Position numbers and translations under genes: made by a program. Positions 3,376 through 59,000 of a stretch of 64,000 nucleotides of DNA are shown here, one piece after another; positions within the stretch are counted from its first letter, which is position 1, and each line of letters begins with the position of its first letter. A model generated the notes under the pieces. That model ran no database searches. It worked only from the letters and a program-made list of their open reading frames with translations, and was not told where the DNA came from. This DNA is from Heteronotia binoei (lineage: Eukaryota): the NCBI RefSeq assembly GCF_032191835.1, contig NC_083228.1:101060001-101124000 (forward strand), given 5' to 3'.

Positions 3376-6300
3376 CTGGAAGAAACAGGCAAAAGAACTA
3401 TAAGGCATCAAAACTGTTACCTGATCCTATGCATGGTTATTCAGGAGTTAGTCTTCCTGTCAAGGCACAAGCTATAATTCATTACTTAGATGGTAATGAA
3501 CTCAGTGGTACTTCCTTATTGCCATACTTTAGCTAGGGCCGTAATTTATTAAATAATACATTTGAATATCTTTTATTGGATCAAGATGGATGAAAGCTTA
3601 TTTCAGTTATACAAATGGAAGGGTTGCTCCCAGAAGTCTATTCTTATATATTGTCTGTGGGAGAAACCCAGACATCATTAAGATAGTCCCTAGTTTTGCT
3701 ATAATTACTGAAAAAACCTTCACAGTATAAAATTGGTAAAAAAATATACTGGTGCTTAAAATTTTAGGCTGAGATTTTGTTATTACAATTCTGAATGGAT
3801 ATGTGTGAGAGAGGGAGTGAGAATTTATTTTGGTTTGTTATGATAACTCATGGGTTATTTCAAACATTCATTCATTCATACAGTTCCCACTAACTGTGTA
3901 ATGAGGCATAAGGGAATGAACCACAATTATTTTATTGAATGATAATCTGAAAAAAAAGTATAGTTTTTCAGTGATAAAATGCAGTTATCATGAAAGCAAT
4001 GTGTGGATTTTTACCAAGCCTCTGTAATGAACCAAGGCCAAAATAGTATTCATTCAGTCTTACCATCAAAAATGAATATCCTATCCAAAGACTTCTCCAG
4101 TTCAGCGGACATGGAGGAATGGATTGATCTTGACTATGAATGGCAACAGCTTGGGCAGGAGCTTCACATACAGCACATCTGCTAATGTAGGGCTGTATTT
4201 CTTCATCAGAGATGGGCATCATGGGTAAAGGAGCAGCACTTGACAACCAGTAAGATTTATCATTTCTGCTTGCATAGTAGCAGACCTGATTGATATTGCA
4301 ATAGGCAAAAGGCATGGTGCTGAATACAGAAAGACAAGATCCAGCCAAACCTAGAACAAAGGAAAACAAAAGCAAAGTTAAATGAAGATGAAGAATAGTT
4401 AAAGTCAGTCTTGTCCAACTCTGGACTATACTGCCCAGTAATGATTAACACTTAATTATTAATGGGAACTCACAGTGGCAGGTTTCCTCACAATGTATGT
4501 TGTTGCCACAAAAGCCTCGTTACATAGTAGGTAACTGCCATAGTAATGGAGTTCAATGTGCATGTAGTCTTCATCTATTAATTTTCAAGTTGGACTACTT
4601 CATAAACCAAAAGGATTGTTATCAGGATAATATGGAGGAGAGACGAATTATGTATGCCACCCTGAGTGTCTTGGAGGAAGGGAGGGATAAACATTTTACT
4701 AAATGAATAAATAAAAATTCACACCCATCTGATATTTACAGTTATGGGAAAATTTCATTTTTGACACGGGAGAGTAAAACTCACAATCTCACAGTCATTT
4801 CTTGAGGATCAAGAAATTACTACTGGAGGTAACAATCAGAAAATATACTGTTGCAGGTGGTAATTTTGCCTAGTTGAATATGGTGTAAAAACAGTAAGTT
4901 TATTGTTTATTTATTTTATTGTCTGCAAACAATCAGTTTTTCTTGGGTTGTGTGTGTGCTATATCTTTATGTACTCTTTGGCTGATTCCGCAGTCAGCTT
5001 TCTCCAGGGCAGGCTTCCGTTTCTGGGCAGAGCAAACTGGCAATTTCGTTCCAGTTGCTCTGTGCTGGCATTTTGTGCAGGGCAAACCCACGATTTGCCC
5101 TGCCACAGTGTAAACCTGAAAAAACAGGTTTACATTGTGGCGGGGCAAATCGCAGGTTTGCCCTGTGTAAAATGCCATCACGGAGCAACTGGTGTGAAAT
5201 CGCCAGTTTGCTCCGCCCAGAAACGGAAGCCTGCCCCAGAGAAAGGTGAGTGCAGAATGAGCCTGTGTGTAAAGTGCCATTAATTCACAGCAACTATCAT
5301 CACAGTTCATTACCTTCTGTCAACCCAGCAAGGCAAGAGAGAAGCAGAGGTGGTTTGCCATTCCCTTTCTCTGTAGGTGTCTTCCTTAAAAGAACCAACC
5401 CTGTTTTGAAATCTGATGAGATTAGGCTATATATTGCCTTCCTCCCATTTCTCATTGTACTCTGATACTTTCCTATAAATCTAATTATGAAATAATGGCA
5501 ACTGAAACAGGCCTTATTGATGTATTTTATATATTCCACTTGTATGAAAATACAGATGTGTTAAAATTCAAGCACTGACTCTGACGTGGCACAGTTCTGT
5601 ACCGTCTCATATATCTATTGTTAAGTTTGTTGGAAAAAATACAGTGTTTCACATGTGTGAAACCTTTACATGTTAGAGAGAACTATGAAATACAATAAAG
5701 TATGGGGAGAAATGTCATTTCTACCCAGATAAAAAGTTCACTGCTTACCAAGATCTTGATTATAGGCCTTCTCCTGTCCTTCAAGATACAGCAGACTGTA
5801 TCCAGTCCATAATTTTGCCATTCCCTCTGGACACAGTGGTTCTTGGTCTGATTGACTGTGCAGAACAAGTAAGAATCCACTAGCAGCTCTTGTTTCAGGC
5901 CCTGGTGGCCCTGGTATCCCAGTCTGGCCTGGAGGACCTTATGGAATGAAAATAAGATACATAACATCCCATTTTAAAGCAGGACATGTTTCTTTGATAA
6001 ATTAATACCTTTAGCTTCTCAGAGCAGATAAAAGGAAAGTTGTTAGGCTTCAGCGAAAGAATACTTGATCGTGTGTTGATCATTGTTAGTTTGAATGCAA
6101 GGCACTCCCTCAAACAAGTGAAAAAAGACCTTACATTATTTGACATACAGTTTTAGAGACACATGGTTTCATCTCAAGGCTGTAATAACTGGCGCAAAAA
6201 TTAAATGCAGTCGGCTGCAAAGTAGCACATCCTACCAAAGGGTGGTGAATGGTTGCAGAATGCTTACCTCGCAGCCCTGGGTATCCTTTTTCTCCCTTGT

Positions 6301-18300: not shown

Positions 18301-21300
18301 TTGGCTAAATGTTAGGCAAGAGATATATGGCTAGTGTGCAGCAGCTGACTCCAACATCAGTAAATATTAAGGATTAATCTTTGGAATCTAATATGCTGCT
18401 GATATCTCTCTTGATTCTTGGCTTATTTAACCATGATTGATGGTTCTGTTTACTTTGCTTTCTAACTTCTGCCAACAATCCATTACAACGACAACACTTG
18501 TAAGTCTATAATTGAAGCAGTCACAGTTCTGTGCTGCTAGATACGAGCTGAATTTGCTGCAATGGAAGTCAGCCATTATTTGCTACATTTTACAGCACAG
18601 TACTGTTTGAAACTAAGAACATAAGAACATAAGAGAAGCCATGTTGGATCAGGCCAACGGCCCATCAAGTCCAACACTCTGTGTCACACAGTGGCAAAAA
18701 ATGTTATATACACACATACACTGTGGCTAATAGCCACTGATGGACCTGTGCTCCATATTTTTATCTAAACCCCTCTTGAAGGTGGCTATACTTGTGGCCG
18801 CCACCACCTCCTGTGGCAGTGAATTCCACATGTTAATCACCCTTTGGGTGAAGAAGTACTTCCTTTTATCCGTCTTAACCTGTCTGCTCAGCAATTTCAT
18901 CGAATGCCCACGAGTTCTTGTATTGTGAGAAAGGGAGAAAAGTACTTCTTTCTCTACTTTCTCCATTCCATGCATTATCTTGTAAACCTCTATCATGTCA
19001 CCCCGCAGTCGACGTTTCTCCAAGCTAAAGAGTCCCAAGCGTTTCAACCTTTCTTCATAGGGAAAGTGCTCCAGCCCTTTAATCATTCTAGTTGCCCTTC
19101 TCTGCACCTTCTCTAAAGCTATAATATCCTTTTTGAGGTGCGGCGACCAGAACTGCACACAGTACTCCAAATGAGACCGCACCATCGATTTATACAGGGG
19201 CATTATGATACTGGCTGATTTGTTTTCAATTCCCTTCCTAATAATTCCCAGCATGGCATTGGCCTTTTTTATTGCAAACGCACACTGTCTTGACACTTTC
19301 AGTGAGTTATCTATCATGACCCCAAGATCTCTCTCTTGATCAGTCTCTGCCAGTTCACACCCCATCAACTTGTATTTGTAGCTGGGATTCTTAGCCCCAA
19401 TGTGCATTACTTTGCACTTGGCCACATTGAACCGCATCTGCCACGTTGACGCCCACTCACCCAGCCTCAACAGATCCCTTTGGAGTTCCTCACAATCCTC
19501 TCTGGTTCTCACCACCCTGAACAATTTAGTGTCATCCGCAAACTTGGCCACTTCACTGCTCACTCCGAACTCTAAATCATTTATGAACAAGTTAAAAAGC
19601 ATGGGACCCAGTACCGAGCCCTGCGGCACCCCACTGCTTACCGTCCTCCACTGCGAAGACTGCCCATTTATACTCACTCTCTGCTTCCTATTACTCAGCC
19701 AGTTTTTGATCCACAAGAGGACCTGTCCTTTTACTCCATGATTCTCAAGCTTTCTAAGGAGCCTTTGATGAGGAACTTTATCAAAAGCTTTCTGGAAGTC
19801 AAGGTAAACAACATCTATCGGGTCTCCTTTGTCCACATGTTTGTTCACCCCCTCAAAGAAATGCAACAGGTTAGTGAGGCAAGATCTTCCCTTGCAGAAC
19901 CCATGCTGAGTCTTCCTCAATAACCCGTGTTCATCAATGTGCCTACTCATTCTGTCCTTGATAATGGTTTCTACCAACTTTCCCGGTATTGAAGTCAGAC
20001 TGACTGGCCTGTAGTTTCCCGGATCTCCTCTGGAACCTTTTTTAAAGATGGGGGTGACATTTGCTACCTTCCAGTCCTCAGGAATGGAGGCAGATTTCAA
20101 TGAAAGATTACAGATTTTTGTTAGAAGATCCACAAGTTCAACTTTGAGTTCCTTCAGAACTCTCGGATGTATGCCATCCGGACCCGGTGACTTATTAGTT
20201 TTTAATTTGTCTATCAGTTGTAGGACCTCCTCATTTGTCACCTCAATCTGACTCAGGTCTTTCAACACCCCTTCCAAAATTAGTGGTTCTGGGGCGGGCA
20301 AAAAGTTCTCGTCTTCTACAGTGAAGACGGAGGCAAAAAATTCATTTAGCTTTTCAGCCATTTCCCTATCCTCCTTCAGTAATCCTTTTACCCCATGGTC
20401 ATCCAAGGGCCCCACTGCCTCCCTGGCTGGTTTCCTACTTCTAATATATTTGAAGAAAGTTTTATTGTTGGTCTTTATGTTTTTTGCAATATGCTCCTCA
20501 TAGTCCCTTTTTGCCTGCCTGATCACAGTCTTGCATTTGATTTGCCACAGCCTGTGTTCCCTTTTACTAATCTCACTTGGACTGGTTTTCCACCGCTTAA
20601 AGGAGTCCTTCTTACCTTTTACAGCTTCCATTACTTTATTTGTTAACCACGCAGGCCTTTTCTTATGCCTGTTTGTGCCTTTCCTAACTTGTGGTATGTA
20701 TTTTATCTGAGCTTCTAGGATTATAGTTTTAAATAGCGTCCAAGCTTTCTCAAGGGTTTTGACCGTATGTACCTTTCCTTGCCTTATTTAAACTAGCCTT
20801 ATTTAAATATATGTGACCATTTACTTCAAGGATAACTCAAAGAAGTACGGTTTCAGGACTGGACCATTAATTATAGATATGAGGAACACAATTTTAAAAC
20901 AGGTGTGTTAGGCATCCCTCATAATACCATTCCCTTATATTTAAAAATGGTGTAAATGAGCACCATTGTTTTAGTGCCTAAAAATAATGAATTCATTTGA
21001 CTAACAAAAGTTTTCATATAAACACACAATAAACTAATTGGGGGAAAACAGACATGACAGAGACCATGAGATCTCTAACTGTAAAATGTATCTCACAACG
21101 TCCCAGTTTGTACCAAGATCATGCAGAGAAGGAAGAGACTTCATTTACTTTACAGTTTTTAAATAAATCAGACACAAGGTAGTTCACATACATTTAAAAA
21201 CAAATACAAATAGTTTAACCCTTCAATCTTGGTTTTACTAACTGAAATTCCCCCCAACACAGAAAAGTTTTAGTACTTTAAAGAGAAAAACTTGTCCTTT

Positions 21301-37964: not shown

Positions 37965-40900
37965 TTTTATTTCTATCCCGCCCTCCCCGCCGGAGCAGGC
38001 TCAGGGTGGCTCACAACAGAAAACACACATTACATCAATTATACTTATAAAACATGGTTAAAACAATTACAAATTATTAAAATTAACTTAACAATATGGC
38101 GTTATAAACAGGTTTCAGTAAATTTCAGAGAGTAAAAGCATTTCAAGAATAAAAGCATTTTCAGCAGCCTACCTAGTTTGTCACTAGTTTTCCACTAGTT
38201 GAAGGCCATCTTGAAGAGGTGGGTCTTGCAGGCCCTACGGAATCCATCTAAACATCGTAGGGCCCTCACCTCCTCAGGGAGTTGATTCCACAGTAATGGA
38301 GCGGTAATAGAGAAGGCCCAGTCCCGGGTGGCCTTCAGTCTGGCCTCCCTTGGCCCAGGGATATTCAACTGGTTTTTCCCAGATGACCTCAGTGCCCTCT
38401 GGGGCTCATATGGGGAGAGACGGTCCCTTAGGTAGGTAGGTCCTCGGCCATATAGGGCTTTAAAGGTAATAACCAGCACCTTGTAGCGAACTCGGTATGC
38501 CACTGGCAACCAGTGCAGCCCGCGCAGCCCCGGCTGTATGTGCTCCCACCTTGGGAGCCCCAGCAACAGTCTAGCCGCCGCGTTCTGCACCAGCTGCAGC
38601 CGCTGAATTCGGCACAAGGGCAGCCCCATGTAGAGGGCGTTGCAGTAGTCCAGTCTCGAGGTGACCGTAGCATGGATCACCGTTGCTAGGTCGCGGCGCT
38701 CCAGGAAGGGGGCCAACTGCTTCGCCCGTCGAAGATGAAAGAACGCGGACTTAGCAGCGGCCGCTATCTGTGCCTCCATTGATAATGAAGGCTCCAGAAG
38801 AACCCCCAGGCTCTTGACCTTGTGTGCCGCTTTAAGCTGCACACCGTCAAGAACTGGCAAGGGGATTTCCCCTCCCAGGGCACCGCGACCCAAGCACAGG
38901 ACCTCTGTCTTCGTTGGATTCAGCTTCAGCCTGCTTAGTCTGAGCCAGCCTGCCACGGCTTGCAATGCTAGGTCCAGGCTTTCTGGGACGGAGCCAGGCC
39001 GGCCATCCATTAGTAGATAGAGTTGGGTGTCATCAGCGTATTGATGGCACCCAAGCCCAAACCTCCAGGCAATCTGGGCAAGGGGGCGCATATAGATGTT
39101 AAACAACATCGGGGATAGAACTGCCCCTTGTGGCACCCCGCATGCTAGTGGGTGCCTCCGGGACCGTTCCCCCCCAATGGCCACCCTTTGTCCCCGTCCT
39201 TCGAGGAAGGAGGAAAGCCACTGTAAGGCCAATCCCCCAATCCCCGCGTCGGCGAGCCGGCGGGCCAGTAACCGATGATCAACCGTATCAAATGCGGCCG
39301 ACAGATCCAGCAATATCAGCACCGCCACGCCGCCTCGATCCAGATGCCGCTGGAGGTCATCCACCAAGGCGACCAGCACTGTCTCCGTCCCATAACCCGG
39401 ACGGAAGCCGGACTGGTGAGGGTCTAAGGCGGAAGTGTCATCCAAAAAACTCTGCAACTGTAACGCCACTGCCCTCTCTATAACCTTACCTAAAAATGGT
39501 AGGTTCGAGACTGGCCAATAATTTGCCAATTCGGCCGGGTCTGCTGTACTCTTTTTTAGGAGAGGGCGGACCATGGCCTCTTTCAAAGATGTTGGAAATT
39601 GCCCTTCCAAGAGGGATCTATTTATGATATCCCGTATAGGATATCTAAGCTCCCTCTGGCAGGATTTTAATTAGCCAGGAGGGGCATGGGTCAAGGTCAC
39701 AAGTTGTAGGGCGTACAGTTGAGAGGACTTCGTCGACTTCCCCAAGACTAAGCGCGTCGAAGTGATCCAAGATAACATCAGAAGACAGGCACGGAGCCCC
39801 GGGTTCATCTACTGCGTTCAATGTGGCAGGAAAGTCCTGGCGGAGCGACGAGATTTTATCTGCAAAAAATTTCGCAAAAGCCTCACAGCCTATTTCCAAT
39901 TCTCTCATATTTGGTCTGCCTTGGGGCAGAGTGGTCAAATTCTCAATTAACTTAAATAATTGTGCTGGGCGCGAATTTGCAGATGCAATCCTAGCTGCAA
40001 AGTATTCCTTCTTTGCGGCTTTGACTGCCATCTCATAAGACTTCATAAATGTTCTGTAGGATGTTCTCGTCGCTTCGTCACGAGTATGCCGCCACCGCCT
40101 CTCTAGTCGTCTGAGTCCCTGTTTCAGTTGGCGTAGCTCCGAGGTATACCAAGGAGCCAGCCTACTTCGGGGGCGCAGAGGACGCCGGGGTGCAATTTCG
40201 TTGATGGCCCTGGATAACCTGTCATGCCAGGTATTACAGCATGAACGTGTACATAACTCTTAATTTAGGTATCATAAACATGCAAAGACAAAATGGAAAT
40301 TCAAATTTTGCTAAATTTTGATTCCCAGATACAGCAGGAGAGCATTTTCATCTAGACTGTGGACTAGTGCCAATTCACATGTCCTTAGGAAGACCTTGTG
40401 ACCCCGACATGGTGACAATGAGTGCTTTTTTTTTTTTTAGTTTTTAACTTTTTTATTACATTTAACAACAACAATAACAATATATATATATATACACAAA
40501 ACATAAACTTAGGGATGTAGACAGCGGGATGCATTATATACTTATATCATTAGAATACAAATCCTTTGTTCTAACCTAAACCAAATCATACATACTACAG
40601 TTAACCCCTTTTTACACTATATTCTTATTATCTTTCCCCCATAACCATTCATACAATAAGTTCCATTTCCCCTCTGTTTGTCTATTTGCTAATTTCTTCT
40701 CTTAATATCTCCATCAGAGTATCTACCTCAGCTCAGTCTAGAACCAACCAAAAATACTTTCTTTCTTCTACACTGTGATCCAAAAGAACATTTGGCATTT
40801 CAAGTCATCTTACTTTATTTATAAATTACACAGTATCAATTTAATTCCCTGCAACAACAACAACAAAAACCCCCCAGCAAGTTTGGAATACACTTTAATA

Positions 40901-43900
40901 CAATAAGTTCCGTTTTCCTTCTATCTAATTGTTAATTTCTTCTCTTAGTATCTCCATCAGAGTATCTACCTCAGCTAAGTCTAGAACTAACGAAAAAGAA
41001 AACTTTCTTTCTTCTACACTGTGGTCCCAAAAAGAAGAAAAAAAAAACATTGGCATTTCAAATCATCTTACTTTGTTTGTGAATTGCATGGTATCAATTT
41101 GTTTCCCTGCAACAAAGCAACCAGCAATTTCGGAATACACTTTCTTCAGTTTTATTGGTGTAATATGCCAACGATATAACTTTAATGATTTGTCTCTCAT
41201 CGTCTGGCAGACCAATTCCTTCATTTTCCTCCTAATACACCTTATATAAACCTCTCTCAGCAGGCGGTGTTCCTTGAAAAAAATAAGGCAAGCTCTATAG
41301 CCATTTTCTATATCTTTCTCCAATTCCTTTTTCTTCATACCAAGAACTGGTGTCAAGATCTCTACTATCACTTCCTTTATATGGTCATACCTATCCTCTG
41401 GAATATTCTGCATTCCTGAAATATGCTCTACCTGCACCGTTTCTATTCTCACTAATCTGTCCCCTTCGTATTTTTGAACTTTTTCAATCTCCTCAGACTT
41501 TTCATTCACTACTTCCAACTTTCCTTCCACATATTTTGCAGATTGTGTCAAGCCATGAATCTCTTCCTTTACTTCCGTCAGTTGCTTTTGCAGGCCATCT
41601 AATTTCTTATTTACTCCATCTAATTGTTCTGTCAGATTTGCCTGCACCTGACTCAATGCATTCATAAAATACAATTGCATAGAATTCTGCACTTCCTCTA
41701 TAACTTCCTGTGAGGACATTATCTCCATCAGTTTTAAAGTTGCCAATAGTGGGACTAACCTATCTATTTTGTCTTACTTGTATGTCATACTCATTTTTCT
41801 ATTATCCAAGGTCTTACTGACACCCCAATTCCAATTCATATACTACTACTTCGCCTTACTTCACTCAAAATTCATACATCACCTTCCTTTAACACTCTCA
41901 CATACCAGTTGGTTTTTATATCCTTAAATTACTATTCTTTACCACCAAACACCCTTCACCTGAACATTCACATTAACTCATTACATATAGAAAATCATAC
42001 AGAAAATCAGCAGTCATCAAATTAACAATAGTTAATTATTCAATCCATTAATTATTTGTTAACTGTCTCTTTTGAATCCTTAATGTTCCCCAACCGCTTA
42101 TCCTTCTGTCTTCCTCTTCTTCTTCTCCTTTTTCTTCCTCTTCCTCTTCTTAATCTCAATCTCTGCTCCTCTCTTCTGCTACCAGTTCAAAAAGCCAGTT
42201 CAGTAAATCCATTCCTGTTCTTCCACATCTCTGCCAACGGAATTCCAGCTTCTCCACCTCACCTCCGCCCTTGCGTTCCTGGAAACTCTATACTAACATC
42301 AAAAGTCTCCCATCTTCAGATTCAACTCATTTCAAAGGTCCAGTGACTTTATTTCCACCCTGTATATTATAACCACTGTTGAGCCTTTATTTAGCTCCCT
42401 GTCTCTTTAAGAAAATCGCCATGCACAAGCATATGGGAAAAGGGAGAGGAAAAGAGGTTCGTGAAGGCTCCCTTTAAATCGTCAGAAATCTCCTGCTTCT
42501 TTCCTCTTTTCCCCCCTTCTTCACCTCCTCTGTCTCAGTGCTCTTCACAAACTTTTACAATCATAGCCAGTCTTCGACTCCCAACCTCTGCCGTTGCTGC
42601 CAAGGTAGTCCTCCACCACTCCTCCGCTTTCTACCTTTGTGCATTCGCCAAACCAGGTCTCTTTCCCCCCAGCGTCGGATTCCACTTGAAAGTAGGGGCA
42701 AAACAACGCACTTAGTAAGTTCTTTCCTTCGTTTATATCTCCAGTTTAGGGTCAGATATACTTTCCCCCCCCTTCTTCACCATTTATTCTGTCCTCCAAA
42801 TGCCGCTTCGCCTACTCCCCTTCTCCGGTGGTCACAGCTAATTCGCCATTAAGGCGTCTGGTCTATCCGGGCTTGAAGTAATATGTTGAACGGGCTCTAT
42901 GCTCAGAAAAACCGGCACAGAGCACCCAGCACTCCTCCGCACGAGTGCCCCTCCAACAGAGGCACCACCGAGTTCTTACCAACTGAAGAACCCCCCAAAA
43001 AAGACCAGCACAGACGCTGCAGAGCCGGAGCTCCTACAAACACGTCTGTTAGCACCGTGCCGTTACCGGAAACTCCGACTTCACAATGAGTGCTTTTGAT
43101 AAAAAGTCTGTACTTAGCCACAAGGGCCTTGTAAAATGTGAATCAGTCTGCCTTTTTGTATTAAACTCTACGATAATTATTGGATGGGGAGATTTGGCAG
43201 TAAGTCATATGATTAAGATATGATTCAAGAGCCCCATGGCTCAGAGTGTTAAAGCTGCAGTATTGCAGTCCTAAGCTCTGCTCACAACCTGAATTCAATC
43301 CCTGGCAGAAGCTGGATTTTCAGGTAGCTGGCTTGAGCTTGACTCAGCCTTCCATCCTTCCAAGGTTGGTAAAATGAGTGCCAGCTTGCTGGGGGGAAAG
43401 TGTAGATGACTGGGGAAGGCAATGGCAAACCACCCCCTAAAAAAAAAGGCTGCCATGAAAACGTTGTGAAAGCAATGTCACCCCAGAGTCTGAAACGACT
43501 GGTGCTCACACAGGGGACCTTTCCTTTCCATATGATTAAGTGAATTATTTTGTCCTGCTGTCTGTGAAATTTCTCCTAGAGAGAGGCTGGAACTGCAATC
43601 TTGCTTGGTAAGTCATCGCTGGCAGTAGTATATGTGAAAAGGAGCTGGGTGTCTTAGTGGACCATACAATGAATATGAGTCAGCAGTGCGATGCGGTAGC
43701 TAAAAAGGCAAATTCGATGTTGGGCTGTATCAACAGAAGTATAGCGTCCAGATCACACAAAGTGATGGTATCGCTTTACTCTGCTCTGGTTATGTCTCAC
43801 CTAGGGTACTGTATTCAGTTTGGGGCACCACAATTTAAGAAGGATACAGACAAGCTGGAAAGTGACCAGAGGAGGGCAATGAAGATAGGATTTTGAAGAC

Positions 43901-51084: not shown

Positions 51085-54000
51085 TGTGGCTAATAGCCAC
51101 TGATGGACCTCTGCTCCATATTTTTATCTAACCCCTTCTTGAAGGTGGCTATGCTTGTGGACGCCACCACCTCCTGTGGCAGTGAATTCCACATGTTAAT
51201 CACCCTTTGGGTGAAGAAGTACTTCCTTTTATCCGTTTTAACCTGTCTGCTCAGCAATTTCATCGAATGCCCACGAGTTCTTGTATTGTGAGAAAGGGAG
51301 AAAAGTACTTCTTTCTCTAGTTTCTCCATCCCATGCATTATCTTGTAAACTTCTATCATGTCACCCCTCAGTCGACGTTTCTCCAAGCTAAAGAGCCCTA
51401 AGCGTTTCAACCTTTCTTCATAGGGAAGGTGTTCCAGCCCTTTAATCATTTTAGTTGCCCTTTTCTGAACTTTCTCCAATGCTATAATATCCTTTTTGAG
51501 GTGCGGCGACCAGAACTGCACACAGTACTCCAAATGAGACCGCACCATCGATTTATACAGAGGCATTATGATACTGGCTGATTTGTTTTCAATTCCCTTC
51601 CTAATAATTCCCAGCATGGCGTTGGCCTTTTTTATTGCAAACGCACACTGTCTTGACATTTTCAGTGAATTATCTACCATGACCCCAAGATCTCTCTCTT
51701 GGTCTGTCTCTGCCAGTTCACACCCCATCAACTTGTATTTGTAGCTGGGATTCTTGGCCCCAATGTGCATTACTTTGCACTTGGCCACATTGAACCGCAT
51801 CTGCCACGTTGACGCCCACTCACCCAGTCTCAACAGATCCCTTTGGAGTTCCTCACAATCCTCTCTGGTTCTCACCACCCTGAACAATTTAGTGTCATCC
51901 GCAAATTTGGCCACTTCACTGCTCACTCCCAACTCTAAATCATTTATGAACAAGTTAGGAGCAGAAGTGCAATTTTGGGACTGCCATTTGCCCAGCACTT
52001 TCCCCCATCAGTACCATGACTAAGGTATAACTCAGTGCTGTGGCTAAATAGCCTTCCTTTTGGAAGACTTTATGGGTTCAGATTAGCTTTGCCCCAACCT
52101 TAAACATTTGCATACTAGAAGCAAAAAAAAAAAAAGACATTCCCTGCTCTGGTCTTGTACTCATTTCTTTACTCTATACAACAAAGATGAGATAGAAGGA
52201 AAGTAGAATCACTGCTGAAAGCTGCTTCCCCAAAGCAATTGCTTCACAGTATTCCATGGTAAGGCCAGTCCCTTGTTCACTGTACAGATTCACAGGATGT
52301 TCTCCTCTCATTTCCCGAATTCAAAGACGCATTTAATATCCCCTTCCACAGTACAGTAGCAAAACAAACTACATCATAAACTAACTGTTTGGCTTGACCT
52401 TACATTTTGCATCTACTACCACTCTGGAAATCTTCAGAGTCATGAAAACTCTAGTAGCACAGAGACATGCCTCTACTTCAGCGGATCTGTGGCTTGTGGT
52501 TTACATAAAGAAAGGTCAGCACAGAATGTTTGAAGCAGGAATAATATTACTTCCACTCAGTGAAATAATATTACTTCCACTCAGTTTTGTAGACCTTCTG
52601 CATGCCAAGCAGATGCTCTGCCACAGAGGTTGTGCTATAGCAATATAAAAGGTCTACAAGTTAACAGCATATATTGTGTTTGCTGAACTTCATACTGGTT
52701 TCCCTTTCTGACACGTCCCTCTTTCTTAAACTTTTTCAACTATAGTTTCCAAACAGAGACAGGTCTTATGTTCTTCAGTTTCTTATGTGAGAAATACTAT
52801 TTATAAATATTTTGCTGCTTTCTACTCCACCCCCTCTCCAAGAATTGGGGACCCAAACAAAATCTTAAAAATGCAAGATGAATCTGTACAAATGTGTCTC
52901 ATACCTTGAAGTCCAGGTAGACCTGTGTCTCCTCTGATTCCAGACAAACCTGGTAGTCCTGGAAGGCCTCTGTTGCCTGCAATTCCTGGAGGGCCATAAC
53001 TGATGTCACCTGGAACACCCTTCTGACTTTGAGGCCCAGGAGCACCTGGCAATCCTGGAGCACCATCCACCCTGGAACCACTTCTACCTTCTTCACCTGA
53101 GTCACCAGTCTCACCCCTGACACCTAAAGAACAATGAAATCTCAGTAATCTTAAACTGCTTTAATGATATGAAATTGAAATTGTCGGTGTTTCACATACA
53201 TATATTTTAGAATAAAAAACAGGCTAGGATTTTCAATCTAGGCTAGCAGTGGGTCCCATATGCTATTTTTTTTTAAAGTAATCTCTACTGCTATCTAATC
53301 TATTTTGCCTAGAACAAAGTTTGAGTCCAGTGGCACCTTTAAGACCAATAAAGTTAGCCGCCCTGAGCCACCTAGGCGGGGAGGGCGGGATACAAATAAA
53401 ATCTATTATTATTATATAGCATACATATATGTTGAGGGTAAGCAGTAAATTAGCTGCCCTGAGCCTGCCTAGGCGGGGAGGGCAGGGTATAAATAAAAGT
53501 TTATTATTATTATTATTAAATTAGCATACAGCATAACGAAAATGTTTAACAGATTCAAGGACCAAACAGGTTGAACAAGCTTAGTTTATATGGACTGGTA
53601 ATTTCCATTTTATTGTATCTGAAGAAGTGTGCATGCACGCAAAACCTTATACCTTGAATAAAACTATGTTGATCTTAAAGATGCCACTGGACTCAAACTT
53701 TGTTCTGCTGCTTCAGACCAACACAGCTGCCCACCTGACTCTATATTAACTAGTTATGCAAGGAGCTGGATTAAGCTTTATGCTTTATCCAAAAGGCACA
53801 CAATCTATCACTGAGCCTCAGGTCCTTCCCGAAACAGAATTTAATGTCCATCCAACATTAAAATACTCGCTTACTGTGTGGAGTCTGCACAGTGTAAAAG
53901 GAAAAGAGGCAGAGCCAATTCAAGGTAATGGTTTGTACCACAGTGTGTGCATTCCCACATGTAACAAATAAAAATACTTCGGCCTTCTTGCACTTACCTT

Positions 54001-56062: not shown

Positions 56063-59000
56063 TGTGGCTAATAGCCACTGATGGACCTCTGCTCCATATT
56101 TTTATCTAACCTCCTCTTGAAGGTGGCCATGCTTGTGGCCGCCACCACCTCCTGTGGCAGTGAATTCCACATGTTAATCACCCTTTGGGTGAAGAAGTAC
56201 TTCCTTTTATCCGTTTTAACCTTTCTGCTCAGCAATTTCATGGAATGCCCACGAGTTCTTGTATTGTGAGAAAGGGAGAAAAGTATTTCTTTCTCTACTT
56301 TCTCCATCCCATGCATTATCTTGTAAACCTCTATCATGTCACCCCGCAGTCGACGTTTCTCCAAGCTAAAGAGCCCTAAGCGTTTCAACCTTTCTTCATA
56401 GGGAAAGTGTTCCAGCCCTTTAATCATTCTAGTTGCCCTTTTCTGGACTTTCTCCAATGCTATAATATCCTTTTTGAGGTGCGGCGACCAGAACTGCACA
56501 CAGTACTCCAAATGAGACCGCACCATCGATTTATGCATCGATTTTATATGATACTGGCTGATTTGTTTTCAATTCCCTTCCTAATAATTCCCAGCATGGC
56601 GTTGGCCTTTTTTATTGCAAACGAACACTGTCTTGACATTTTCAGTGAGTTATCTACCATGACCCCAAGATCTTTCTCATGGTCAGTCTCTGCCAGTTCA
56701 CACCCCATCAACTTGTATTTGTAGCTGGGATTCTTGGCCCCAATGTGCATTACTTTGCACTTGGCCACATTGAACCGCATCTGCCACGTTGACGCCCACT
56801 CACCCAGCCTCAACAGATCCCTTTGGATTTCCTCACAATCCTCTCTGGTTCTCACCACCCTGAACAATTTTGTGTCATCCGCAAACTTGGCCACTTCACT
56901 GCTCACTCTCAACTCTAAATCATTTATGAACAAGTTAAAGAGCATGGGACCCAGTACCGAGCCCTGCGGCACCCCACTGCTTACCGTCCTCCACTGCGAA
57001 GACTGCCCATTTATACTCACTCTCTGCTTCCTATTACTCAGCCAGTTTTTGATCCACAAGAGGACCTGTCCTTTTACTCCATGACTCTCAAGCTTTCTAA
57101 GGAGCCTTTGATGAGGAACTTTATCAAAAGCTTTCTGGAAGTCAAGGTAAACAACATCTATCGGGTCTCCTTTGTCCACATGTTTGTTCACCCCCTCAAA
57201 GAAATGTAGCAGGTTAGTGAGGCATGATCTTCCCCTACAGAACCCATGCTGAGTCTTCCTCAATAACTCGTGTTCATCAATGTGCCTACTCATTCTGTCC
57301 TTGATAATGGTTTCTACCAACTTCCCCGGTATTGAAGTCAGACTGACTGGCCTGTAATTTCCTGGATCTCCTCTGGAACCCTTTTTAAAGATGGGGGTGA
57401 CATTTGCTACCTTCCAGTCCTCAGGAACGGAGGCAGATTTCAATGAAAGATTACAGATTTTTGTTAGAAGATCCACAAGTTCAACTTTGAGTTCGGTGAC
57501 TTATTAGTTTTTTATTTGTCTATTAGTTGTAGGACCTCCTCTTTTGTCACCTCAATCTGACTCAGGTCTTTCAACACCCCTTCCAACATTAGTGGTTCAG
57601 GGGTGGGCAAAAAGTTCTCATCTTCCACAGTGAAGACGGAGGCAAAAAATGCATTCAGCTTCTCAGCCATTTCCCTATCCTCCTTCAGTAATCCTTTTAC
57701 CCCATGGTCATCCAAGGGCCCCACTGCCTCCCTGGCTGGTTTCCTACTTCTAATATATGTGAAGAAATTTTTATTGTTGGTCTTTATGTTTTTTGCAATA
57801 TGCTCCTCATAGTCCTTCTTTGCCTGCCTGATCACAGTCTTGCATTTGATTTGCCACAGCCTGTGTTCCCTTTCATTAATCTCACTTGGACTGGTTTTCC
57901 ACCATTTAAAGGAGTCTTTCTTACCTTTAACAGCTTCCATTACTTTGTTTGTTAACCATGCAGGCCTTTTCTTATACCTTTTTGTGCCTTTCCTAACTTG
58001 TGGTATGTATTTTATCTGAGCTTCTTGGATTATAGTTTTAAATAGTGTCCAAGCTTCCCCAAGGGTTTTGACCGTATTTACCTTTCCTTTCAGTTTCCTC
58101 CTCACATGCCTCCTCATCTCAGAGAATTTACCCCTTTTAAAGTTAAACGTGGTTGTGGCGGTCTTTTTGGGCAACTCCCATGTGAATATAATGTGTACAG
58201 ATTATAATCTGGATCTGAAGAAGTGTGCATGCACACAAAATCTTATAGTTTGAATAAAACTTTCTTAGTCTTAAAAGTGCCACTGGCTCAAACTTTGTTC
58301 TGCCGCTTCAGACCAACATGGCAACCACTTGAATCTATAATAGGAAAGAACTGAACTCACAATTTCCCCCCTATTTAAAATTAATTTTCCTTCTTTAGAT
58401 GACTTTTCTTTTTGTGTTATCAATTCCCCAAAAGGCTGTAGCGTCACTACAGTGACTTTGACTAAGAAGCAGTCTTTTTGCCTATAATGGAATATGATGC
58501 TACTTTGTGAAGGTGTAAATCCCCCACCTCCCACCTTCTTCCAAATCTCTAACCATTTACTGGTTGTCCCTTCCTAAATGCAAGAATATAGATCCCATCA
58601 AAACCCTCCCTTTTCATTCTCTTTCAAAGGTTTGGGAAGGGGTAAGAGATGAAAGAAAGATATAAATTGCAGTAATACAGGAATTCCTGGTGTATTCATT
58701 TGCATATGGACCCATCCATGAAACATGAATTTGGTCTCTCAAATGTGCTGGAACTCTGCCCTTATGTTTCCTTTGTTTGGAAACTTTGCCTGGAAATTTA
58801 AATTTTTAAAGCATCTTTTAAGTCCTTTCTCCCCTTTTAAATAAAGTCTTTCTTCCCACTGCAAACTAGATTTCTGATATCCTGGAAAATTTAACACACA
58901 CCCTTCTAAATTCTTCTATATACCAATGACAGATCTAAATCCCAATGCTTTTATTGAGTTGTGCACAGCAGCAATCTTTTCTCCTTGCACAATGCCCCAC

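Follow-up and report, generated by a model that had tools for sequence, protein, structure and literature searches.

A probable HAL1-like LINE-1 derivative, with an ORF1-type gene and no ORF2, in a collagen IV intron of the gecko Heteronotia binoei

An intron of a collagen IV (COL4A4-like) gene of the gecko Heteronotia binoei carries a minus-strand insert of 2,653 bp, at positions 40430-43082 of the 64,000-nucleotide stretch that we analyzed (hereafter the window; contig NC_083228.1, positions 101,060,001 to 101,124,000 of the forward strand, in RefSeq assembly GCF_032191835.1). It lies in sense orientation, because the host gene is also on the minus strand. Read from its 5′ end, the insert consists of a 5′ untranslated region (UTR) of the type seen in clade-1 LINE-1 (L1) elements, an open reading frame (ORF) coding for a coiled coil and an RNA-recognition motif (RRM), an AT-rich 3′ region with a tandem duplication, the polyadenylation signal AATAAA, and poly(A) (Table 1). 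We interpret it as probably being a young copy, made by retrotransposition, of an L1 lineage with an internal deletion, similar to the HAL1 (half-L1) elements of mammals.

The original prediction, made from the sequence alone, described a minus-strand insert of 2.66 kb between direct repeats, and these prove to be perfect 15-bp target-site duplications (TSDs), with ACAATGAGTGCTTTT in both copies. The chance of finding a 15-mer repeat within a stretch of 2.9 kb is about 0.004, a figure that does not yet count the adjacency of the A-tail. On the minus strand the insert begins with GAAGTCGGAGTTTCCGGT and ends in nine A residues (40430-40438), or 13 if the A's shared with the TSD are included. At the upstream repeat, the plus-strand sequence is ...GCTTTT/GATAAAAAG, and we therefore infer that the first strand was nicked at TTTT/GA, the same target that had been proposed. 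The marks of L1-type insertion are thus all present: a perfect 15-bp TSD, AATAAA followed by an A-run, and a T-rich nick. The remaining predicted dimensions also hold, with 1,354 nt of leader where about 1.3 kb with a CpG-rich 5′ end had been claimed, and 633 nt beyond the ORF stop, including AATAAA and the A-tail, where about 640 bp had been read. There is, as predicted, no room for ORF2 in an insert of this length; a Pfam scan of the ORF pieces outside the ORF1-type frame, in both the leader and the 3′ block, revealed no domains, and no remnant of an endonuclease or reverse transcriptase (RT).

The single recognizable gene codes for 227 amino acids when read from a TTG, or 221 from the first ATG (41728), and stops at 41063-41065. 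It had been predicted to be an ORF1 with a coiled coil and an RRM-like domain; both domains are supported by a structural model and by profile comparison, but it is not a whole ORF1, as the C-terminal domain (CTD) is missing. Scanned directly against Pfam, the ORF had no match to Transposase_22 and only coiled-coil noise, a word-indexed protein search using either the whole ORF or its tail as query returned no match, and an exact-protein look-up with either start found no record. An exhaustive phmmer search with the ORF matched 42 proteins (best E 1.4e-19), all with 20-31% identity. These relatives include squamate L1 ORF1 proteins, and several carry the Transposase_22 RRM profile, with P0005 scoring above the cut-off; a Micrurus protein among them is annotated as 'L1 transposable element RRM domain-containing protein', and a Gekko japonicus protein is misnamed as apolipoprotein A-IV-like. 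A profile of the ORF together with 13 of its matches finds the structures of human LINE-1 ORF1p, 2YKP (E 1.6e-13) and 2YKO. The match to Transposase_22 and L1 ORF1 profiles that had been anticipated from HMMER is absent as a direct Pfam match, but the link is made transitively, through the relatives and 2YKP.

When a hidden Markov model (HMM) of 16 full-length relatives is compared with the element, a single frame matches (E 3.6e-36). The alignment takes in the coiled coil and the RRM, at profile positions 44-236 of 351; the CTD part of the model (profile positions 237-300) has no match in any of the six frames of the element. The AlphaFold2 model of the protein has a mean predicted local distance difference test (pLDDT) score of 84, with a low-confidence tail after about residue 195, and the secondary structure of its RRM is complete (beta-alpha-beta-beta-alpha-beta-beta). 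The top Foldseek matches of the model are the human L1 ORF1p trimer (2YKO, 2YKP, and 2YKQ) and the isolated RRM 2W7A, the latter with a template-modeling score of 0.73 on the target over 96 of 100 residues. The ORF protein is an ORF1p with a coiled coil and an RRM and without a CTD, and the element keeps two-thirds of the first gene of L1.

The closest ORF1 relatives, with about 30% identity, are found on two contigs (L001 and L002), both from Logan run SRR13336341. L002 has a normal ORF1 of 363 amino acids with a second ORF 45 nt later, as in an autonomous L1, and the ORF1 of L001 is frameshifted. We found no DNA similarity between either contig and the leader or the 3′ block of the gecko insert.

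The point at which ORF1 homology gives way to the 3′ block can be placed, with the HMM alignment ending at residue ~190 (window ~41177) and the last RRM strand of the model at ~41153. Beyond it lie two tandem units of ~247 bp with 83% column identity in pairwise alignment; the first 81 nt of unit 1 supply the ORF with its final 27 codons and its stop, and in the equivalent stretch of unit 2 the frame is closed. We considered whether this tail could be a degenerate ORF1 CTD, a reading that is unsupported, with no CTD match to the HMM and a similarity to the CTDs of the relatives no better than that of shuffled controls (z ≤ 1.7). Reading the tail (YRWHITP...L...C) as the C-terminal Cys-motif region of L1 ORF2 fares no better, as neither the tail nor the downstream pieces match Pfam, and there is no PDB match at E ≤ 10, though human ORF2p is in the PDB. 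The AT-rich segment that follows the units fits, in composition, the lizard L1 3′ UTRs described in PMC5381506. Judged by divergence, the 3′ architecture is much older than the 40430-43082 insertion, because the two units differ by ~15-17% while the copy as a whole is only ~1% from the consensus of reads from other samples (see below).

The leader resembles that of lizard L1s in several respects. Its CpG observed/expected ratio is ~0.8 over the first 400 nt, against 0-0.4 further in. Lizard clade-1 L1s have long 5′ UTRs of 0.8-1.5 kb and about 45% GC, and those of Anolis (1,268 +/- 198 nt, 45% GC) share a conserved terminus, GACTTCCGGTG (PMC5381506). The heptamer TTCCGGT at the core of this terminus occurs 12-18 nt from the 5′ end of the insert and has only three matches in the 64 kb, counting both strands; the match of the leader to GACTTCCGGTG is confined to these 7 nt. 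The presence of TTCCGGT near the end, together with a leader length and composition that fit clade-1 L1, argues that this is a genuine L1 5′ terminus.

The published description of Anolis clade-1 L1 also provides a measure of what has been lost. These elements have an ORF1 of ~1,066 nt coding for a coiled coil, an RRM, and a CTD, little or no intergenic region, an ORF2 of ~3.76 kb, and an AT-rich, repeat-bearing 3′ UTR of 194-570 nt with AATAAA and poly(A) (PMC5381506). The gecko element shares the ~1.3-kb 5′ UTR with ~45% GC, a CpG-rich start, and the TTCCGGT terminus, as well as the coiled coil and RRM and an AT-rich, repeat-bearing 3′ end with AATAAA and poly(A). It differs in being 2.65 kb long, when compared by published description with Anolis elements of 6.2-6.7 kb that include the CTD and ORF2; what is missing relative to a lizard L1 is the ORF1 CTD and all of ORF2, or ~4 kb. 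Its sequence suggests a clade-1-type L1 that lacks the whole of ORF2 as well as ~0.5 kb of ORF1, and has gained a duplication of 0.25 kb.

Table 1. Features of the insert and its target-site duplications, in window positions
Feature	Position	Strand	Basis
Target-site duplication, 3′ (A-tail) side of element	40415-40429		15-nt direct repeat, identical to 43083-43097
Polyadenylation signal AATAAA (40452-40457) and short A-rich tail	40430-40457	-	read from sequence
AT-rich terminal part with T, (TA)n, and (TTG)n runs	40458-40640	-	GC 0.13-0.31
Tandem unit 2 of 3′ block	40641-40896	-	direct-repeat families, blastn self-match, pairwise alignment
Tandem unit 1 of 3′ block	40897-41143	-	direct repeats, blastn self-comparison, pairwise alignment
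Junction zone, from end of ORF1 homology to start of 3′ block	41110-41180	-	HMM, model, start of tandem unit, contigs
ORF of L1 ORF1p type without C-terminal domain, 227 amino acids	41063-41746	-	phmmer, HMM, profile against 2YKP
RRM, model residues 103-192, motif QNIPE and conserved YR	41153-41422	-	AlphaFold2, Foldseek
Coiled coil, single long helix, model residues 6-100	41429-41713	-	AlphaFold2, pLDDT 88-98 here
Leader (5′ UTR), 1,354 nt, CpG-rich start, 24 upstream ATGs	41729-43082	-	composition; length and GC fit Anolis clade-1 L1
TTCCGGT, 12-18 nt from 5′ end	43065-43071	-	core of lizard clade-1 L1 terminus GACTTCCGGTG
Target-site duplication, 5′ side of element	43083-43097		perfect 15-nt direct repeat with 40415-40429

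If the junction between ORF1 and the 3′ block were private to this locus, the insert could be an ordinary L1 that suffered a deletion after it inserted, as the original prediction recognized. We compared four sequencing runs over 39800-43700, chosen among the runs holding 32-57% of the element's words; three (X2, X3, and X7, the last unstranded) are RNA libraries, and for the fourth (X1) the DNA label is a guess. A 1,351-nt contig from X2 bridges the junction (40595-41945, with 11 differences from the window), as does a 336-nt contig from X3, which has another species label (41091-41426, with 2 differences). Both extend far more than 31 nt to each side of the junction with ~99% identity to the window, and raw reads of X7 cover it thinly. 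The junction is therefore not private to the gecko locus. A search of metagenome and viral contig collections with 24-mers from the junction and the ORF gave 0 matches.

The reads also carry information about their source. None of the four runs has any depth over the unique flanks of the insert (40324-40454 and 43075-43205), and the interior is covered. At positions 40672, 40689, 40928, 41280, 41372, 41581, 42015, and 42250, all covering runs show the same difference from the window, and positions 40897, 41427, and 41692 are mixed within a run; the common difference at 41280 changes F156 to Y, the residue conserved in the relatives. Because of these shared differences and the uncovered unique flanks, the reads must derive from one or more other copies, and the junction pre-dates the insertion in the window, whose copy has about 1% private changes relative to the read consensus. 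The X2 contig neither breaks nor branches at the junction, and the word depth of the junction contigs is 11.6-11.8, against ~6 for the 5′ UTR contigs, which argues that no full-length parent sharing this ORF1 was abundant in the samples concerned. A further X2 contig (record 14) matches 42930-43073 (~140 nt) and then continues for 345 nt that are foreign to the locus; this extension could be the flank of another copy, or the family could include a variant that is longer at its 5′ end.

Taken together, we regard the element as probably a HAL1-like, trans-mobilized deletion derivative of L1 that forms a small young lineage. Transcription would start from the L1-type 5′ UTR, with its presumed internal promoter, and the RNA would be polyadenylated at AATAAA. 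As the element has neither an endonuclease nor an RT, it would have to be copied in trans, with an autonomous L1 providing the ORF2p that captures its RNA. The target would then be nicked at TTTT/GA and the A-tail used for priming (target-primed reverse transcription), and a break in the second strand 15 nt away would produce the 15-bp TSD. Promoter activity, mobilization in trans, and the status of the deleted form as a replicating unit rather than a by-product are what we infer from the anatomy of the insert.

Several observations weigh against a self-propagating deleted lineage. A second insertion bounded by a TSD of its own did not come to light in the genomic DNA covered, which was that of the window; within these 64 kb, a blastn self-comparison reveals no second copy of the insert. 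The word-indexed and phmmer protein searches found no parent L1 and no protein above about 31% identity. The 24 upstream ATGs in the leader make efficient translation of the ORF doubtful. Coverage in X1 is limited to 41360-43026 and so reaches neither the 3′ block nor the junction, and raw RNA reads are sparse over 40848-41371. All of the contigs that bridge the junction come from RNA libraries, in which a spliced or deleted isoform of a full-length parent would look alike.

This last point leads to an alternative that we consider unlikely, although it deserves real weight: that a full-length L1 parent repeatedly yields spliced or deleted RNA, and the copies are independent dead-end retrocopies rather than members of a self-propagating lineage. 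The last bases 5′ of the junction zone are ...TTAAAG, and an exon could end in this way. An abundant unspliced parent should cause the X2 contig to branch at the junction, but the contig is unbroken there, with a depth at least as great as that of the 5′ UTR contigs. No continuation into a CTD or ORF2 was seen, but the table of loose ends is dominated by a neighboring, presumptive short interspersed element (SINE) and is uninformative on this point. A precedent is offered by human SpIREs, which are known as splices within the 5′ UTR, or from the 5′ UTR into ORF1, and as dead ends. Such by-products are documented for human L1 (PMC5860796), and they resemble the gecko element in having a precise internal gap, intact ends, and TSDs, but differ in that the gap of the gecko element begins where the RRM ends and extends to the 3′ region.

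We think it very improbable that the insert is a processed retrocopy of a host mRNA carrying a domesticated, L1TD1-like ORF1 fragment. RNA is present, and domestication of ORF1 is known (PMC4161310, PMC12129022). The 5′ end, however, has the clade-1 L1 terminal motif, the leader has the length and GC content of an L1 5′ UTR, and a 1.35-kb leader with 24 upstream ATGs is unlike that of a host mRNA; moreover, the variants that are mixed within runs suggest more than one source. Hardly credible at all is an ordinary full-length L1 that inserted here and later lost ~4 kb by deletion at this locus: internal deletions are common in old L1 copies, but the same junction occurs in three other samples, with shared differences from the window copy and the locus flanks uncovered, and this copy has a perfect TSD and departs from the read consensus by only ~1%. 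We count post-insertion deletion as largely refuted.

A lineage of ORF2-less elements propagated by other L1s, which is the interpretation we favor, has counterparts. To date, HAL1-type elements have been described in mammals (PMC5753468); as cited there, they are ORF2-less derivatives of L1 reported to have several independent origins (Smit 1999; Bao and Jurka 2010). The literature that we searched, the scope of which did not extend to Repbase or Dfam, contained no HAL1-type element in squamates. The gecko element likewise has ORF1-type coding, no ORF2, and an L1-type TSD and A-tail. It differs in belonging to another vertebrate class, with no common descent with mammalian HAL1, in having an ORF without the ORF1 CTD whose final 28 residues are encoded by the 3′ block, and in that the evidence for a family with its junction comes from RNA-library contigs. 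An independently evolved squamate HAL1-like family, as originally suggested, is plausible. The gecko element resembles a known kind and is only moderately surprising.

A bolder version of this proposal is that a gecko half-L1 lineage is actively amplifying, arose apart from mammalian HAL1, and makes a functional CTD-less ORF1 protein composed of a coiled coil and an RRM; we view this as improbable. Under this version, the protein could mark its own RNA for the ORF2p of its partner, or could co-trimerize with the ORF1p of its partner and dampen it, and if so the element would be a parasite of a parasite with an interaction at the protein level. Truncated human ORF1p, in the form of fragments with the N terminus plus the coiled coil, can act in trans to suppress L1 (Sokolowski et al. 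2017, PMC5605252), and by analogy trans suppression of L1 by the gecko CTD-less protein, if it is made, is a possibility. The human truncations differ in that they arise from stop codons in full-length L1 loci and were assayed in cells, whereas the gecko protein is known from sequence.

The significance of the element depends on which of these interpretations is correct. If it is a young, expressed, ORF2-less derivative, then lizard L1s, with their many co-active divergent lineages, also spawn protein-coding self-parasites, and the element would offer a natural CTD-less ORF1p with which to test the coiled coil and RRM alone. Should it prove to be a by-product present in few copies, it would amount to an ordinary defective copy of L1.

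The surroundings of the insert include parts of its host gene and other repeats. The collagen IV gene is represented by an NC1 (C4) exon at 3971-4375 on the minus strand (Pfam E 5.5e-34), and for annotation purposes the sense-oriented insert brings a poly(A) signal (AATAAA) into the collagen IV intron. The sequence analyzed met no run of N's, and no part of it was flagged as resembling human DNA. Approximately 120 bp upstream of the element is a very high-copy repeat (43206-43600), presumably a SINE, with many variant sites and internal joints; its summed word depth reaches 8,894 in X1 and 256,136 in X2.

Downstream of the element, at a distance of ~0.2-0.4 kb, lies a minus-strand long interspersed element (LINE) fragment with an RT (38195-40220; RVT_1, E 1e-32), the 5′ part of which has a depth in the thousands in the RNA libraries and none in X1. 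Its RT has a QYADDTQLY-type motif, which we take to be of non-L1 origin. We considered whether the RT of this LINE (38195-40046, minus strand) could be the ORF2 of the element, and rejected it, as the element is closed off at 40430 by its A-tail and TSD; the separate read-depth profile and the QYADDTQLY-type RT also speak against it. A second kind of RT-bearing LINE, with long open frames and a KFADDTKLF motif, is present in three near-identical copies (18727-20631, 51090-51998, and 56068-58174), all on the minus strand. It looks CR1-like by eye, and the near identity of its copies suggests a young family.

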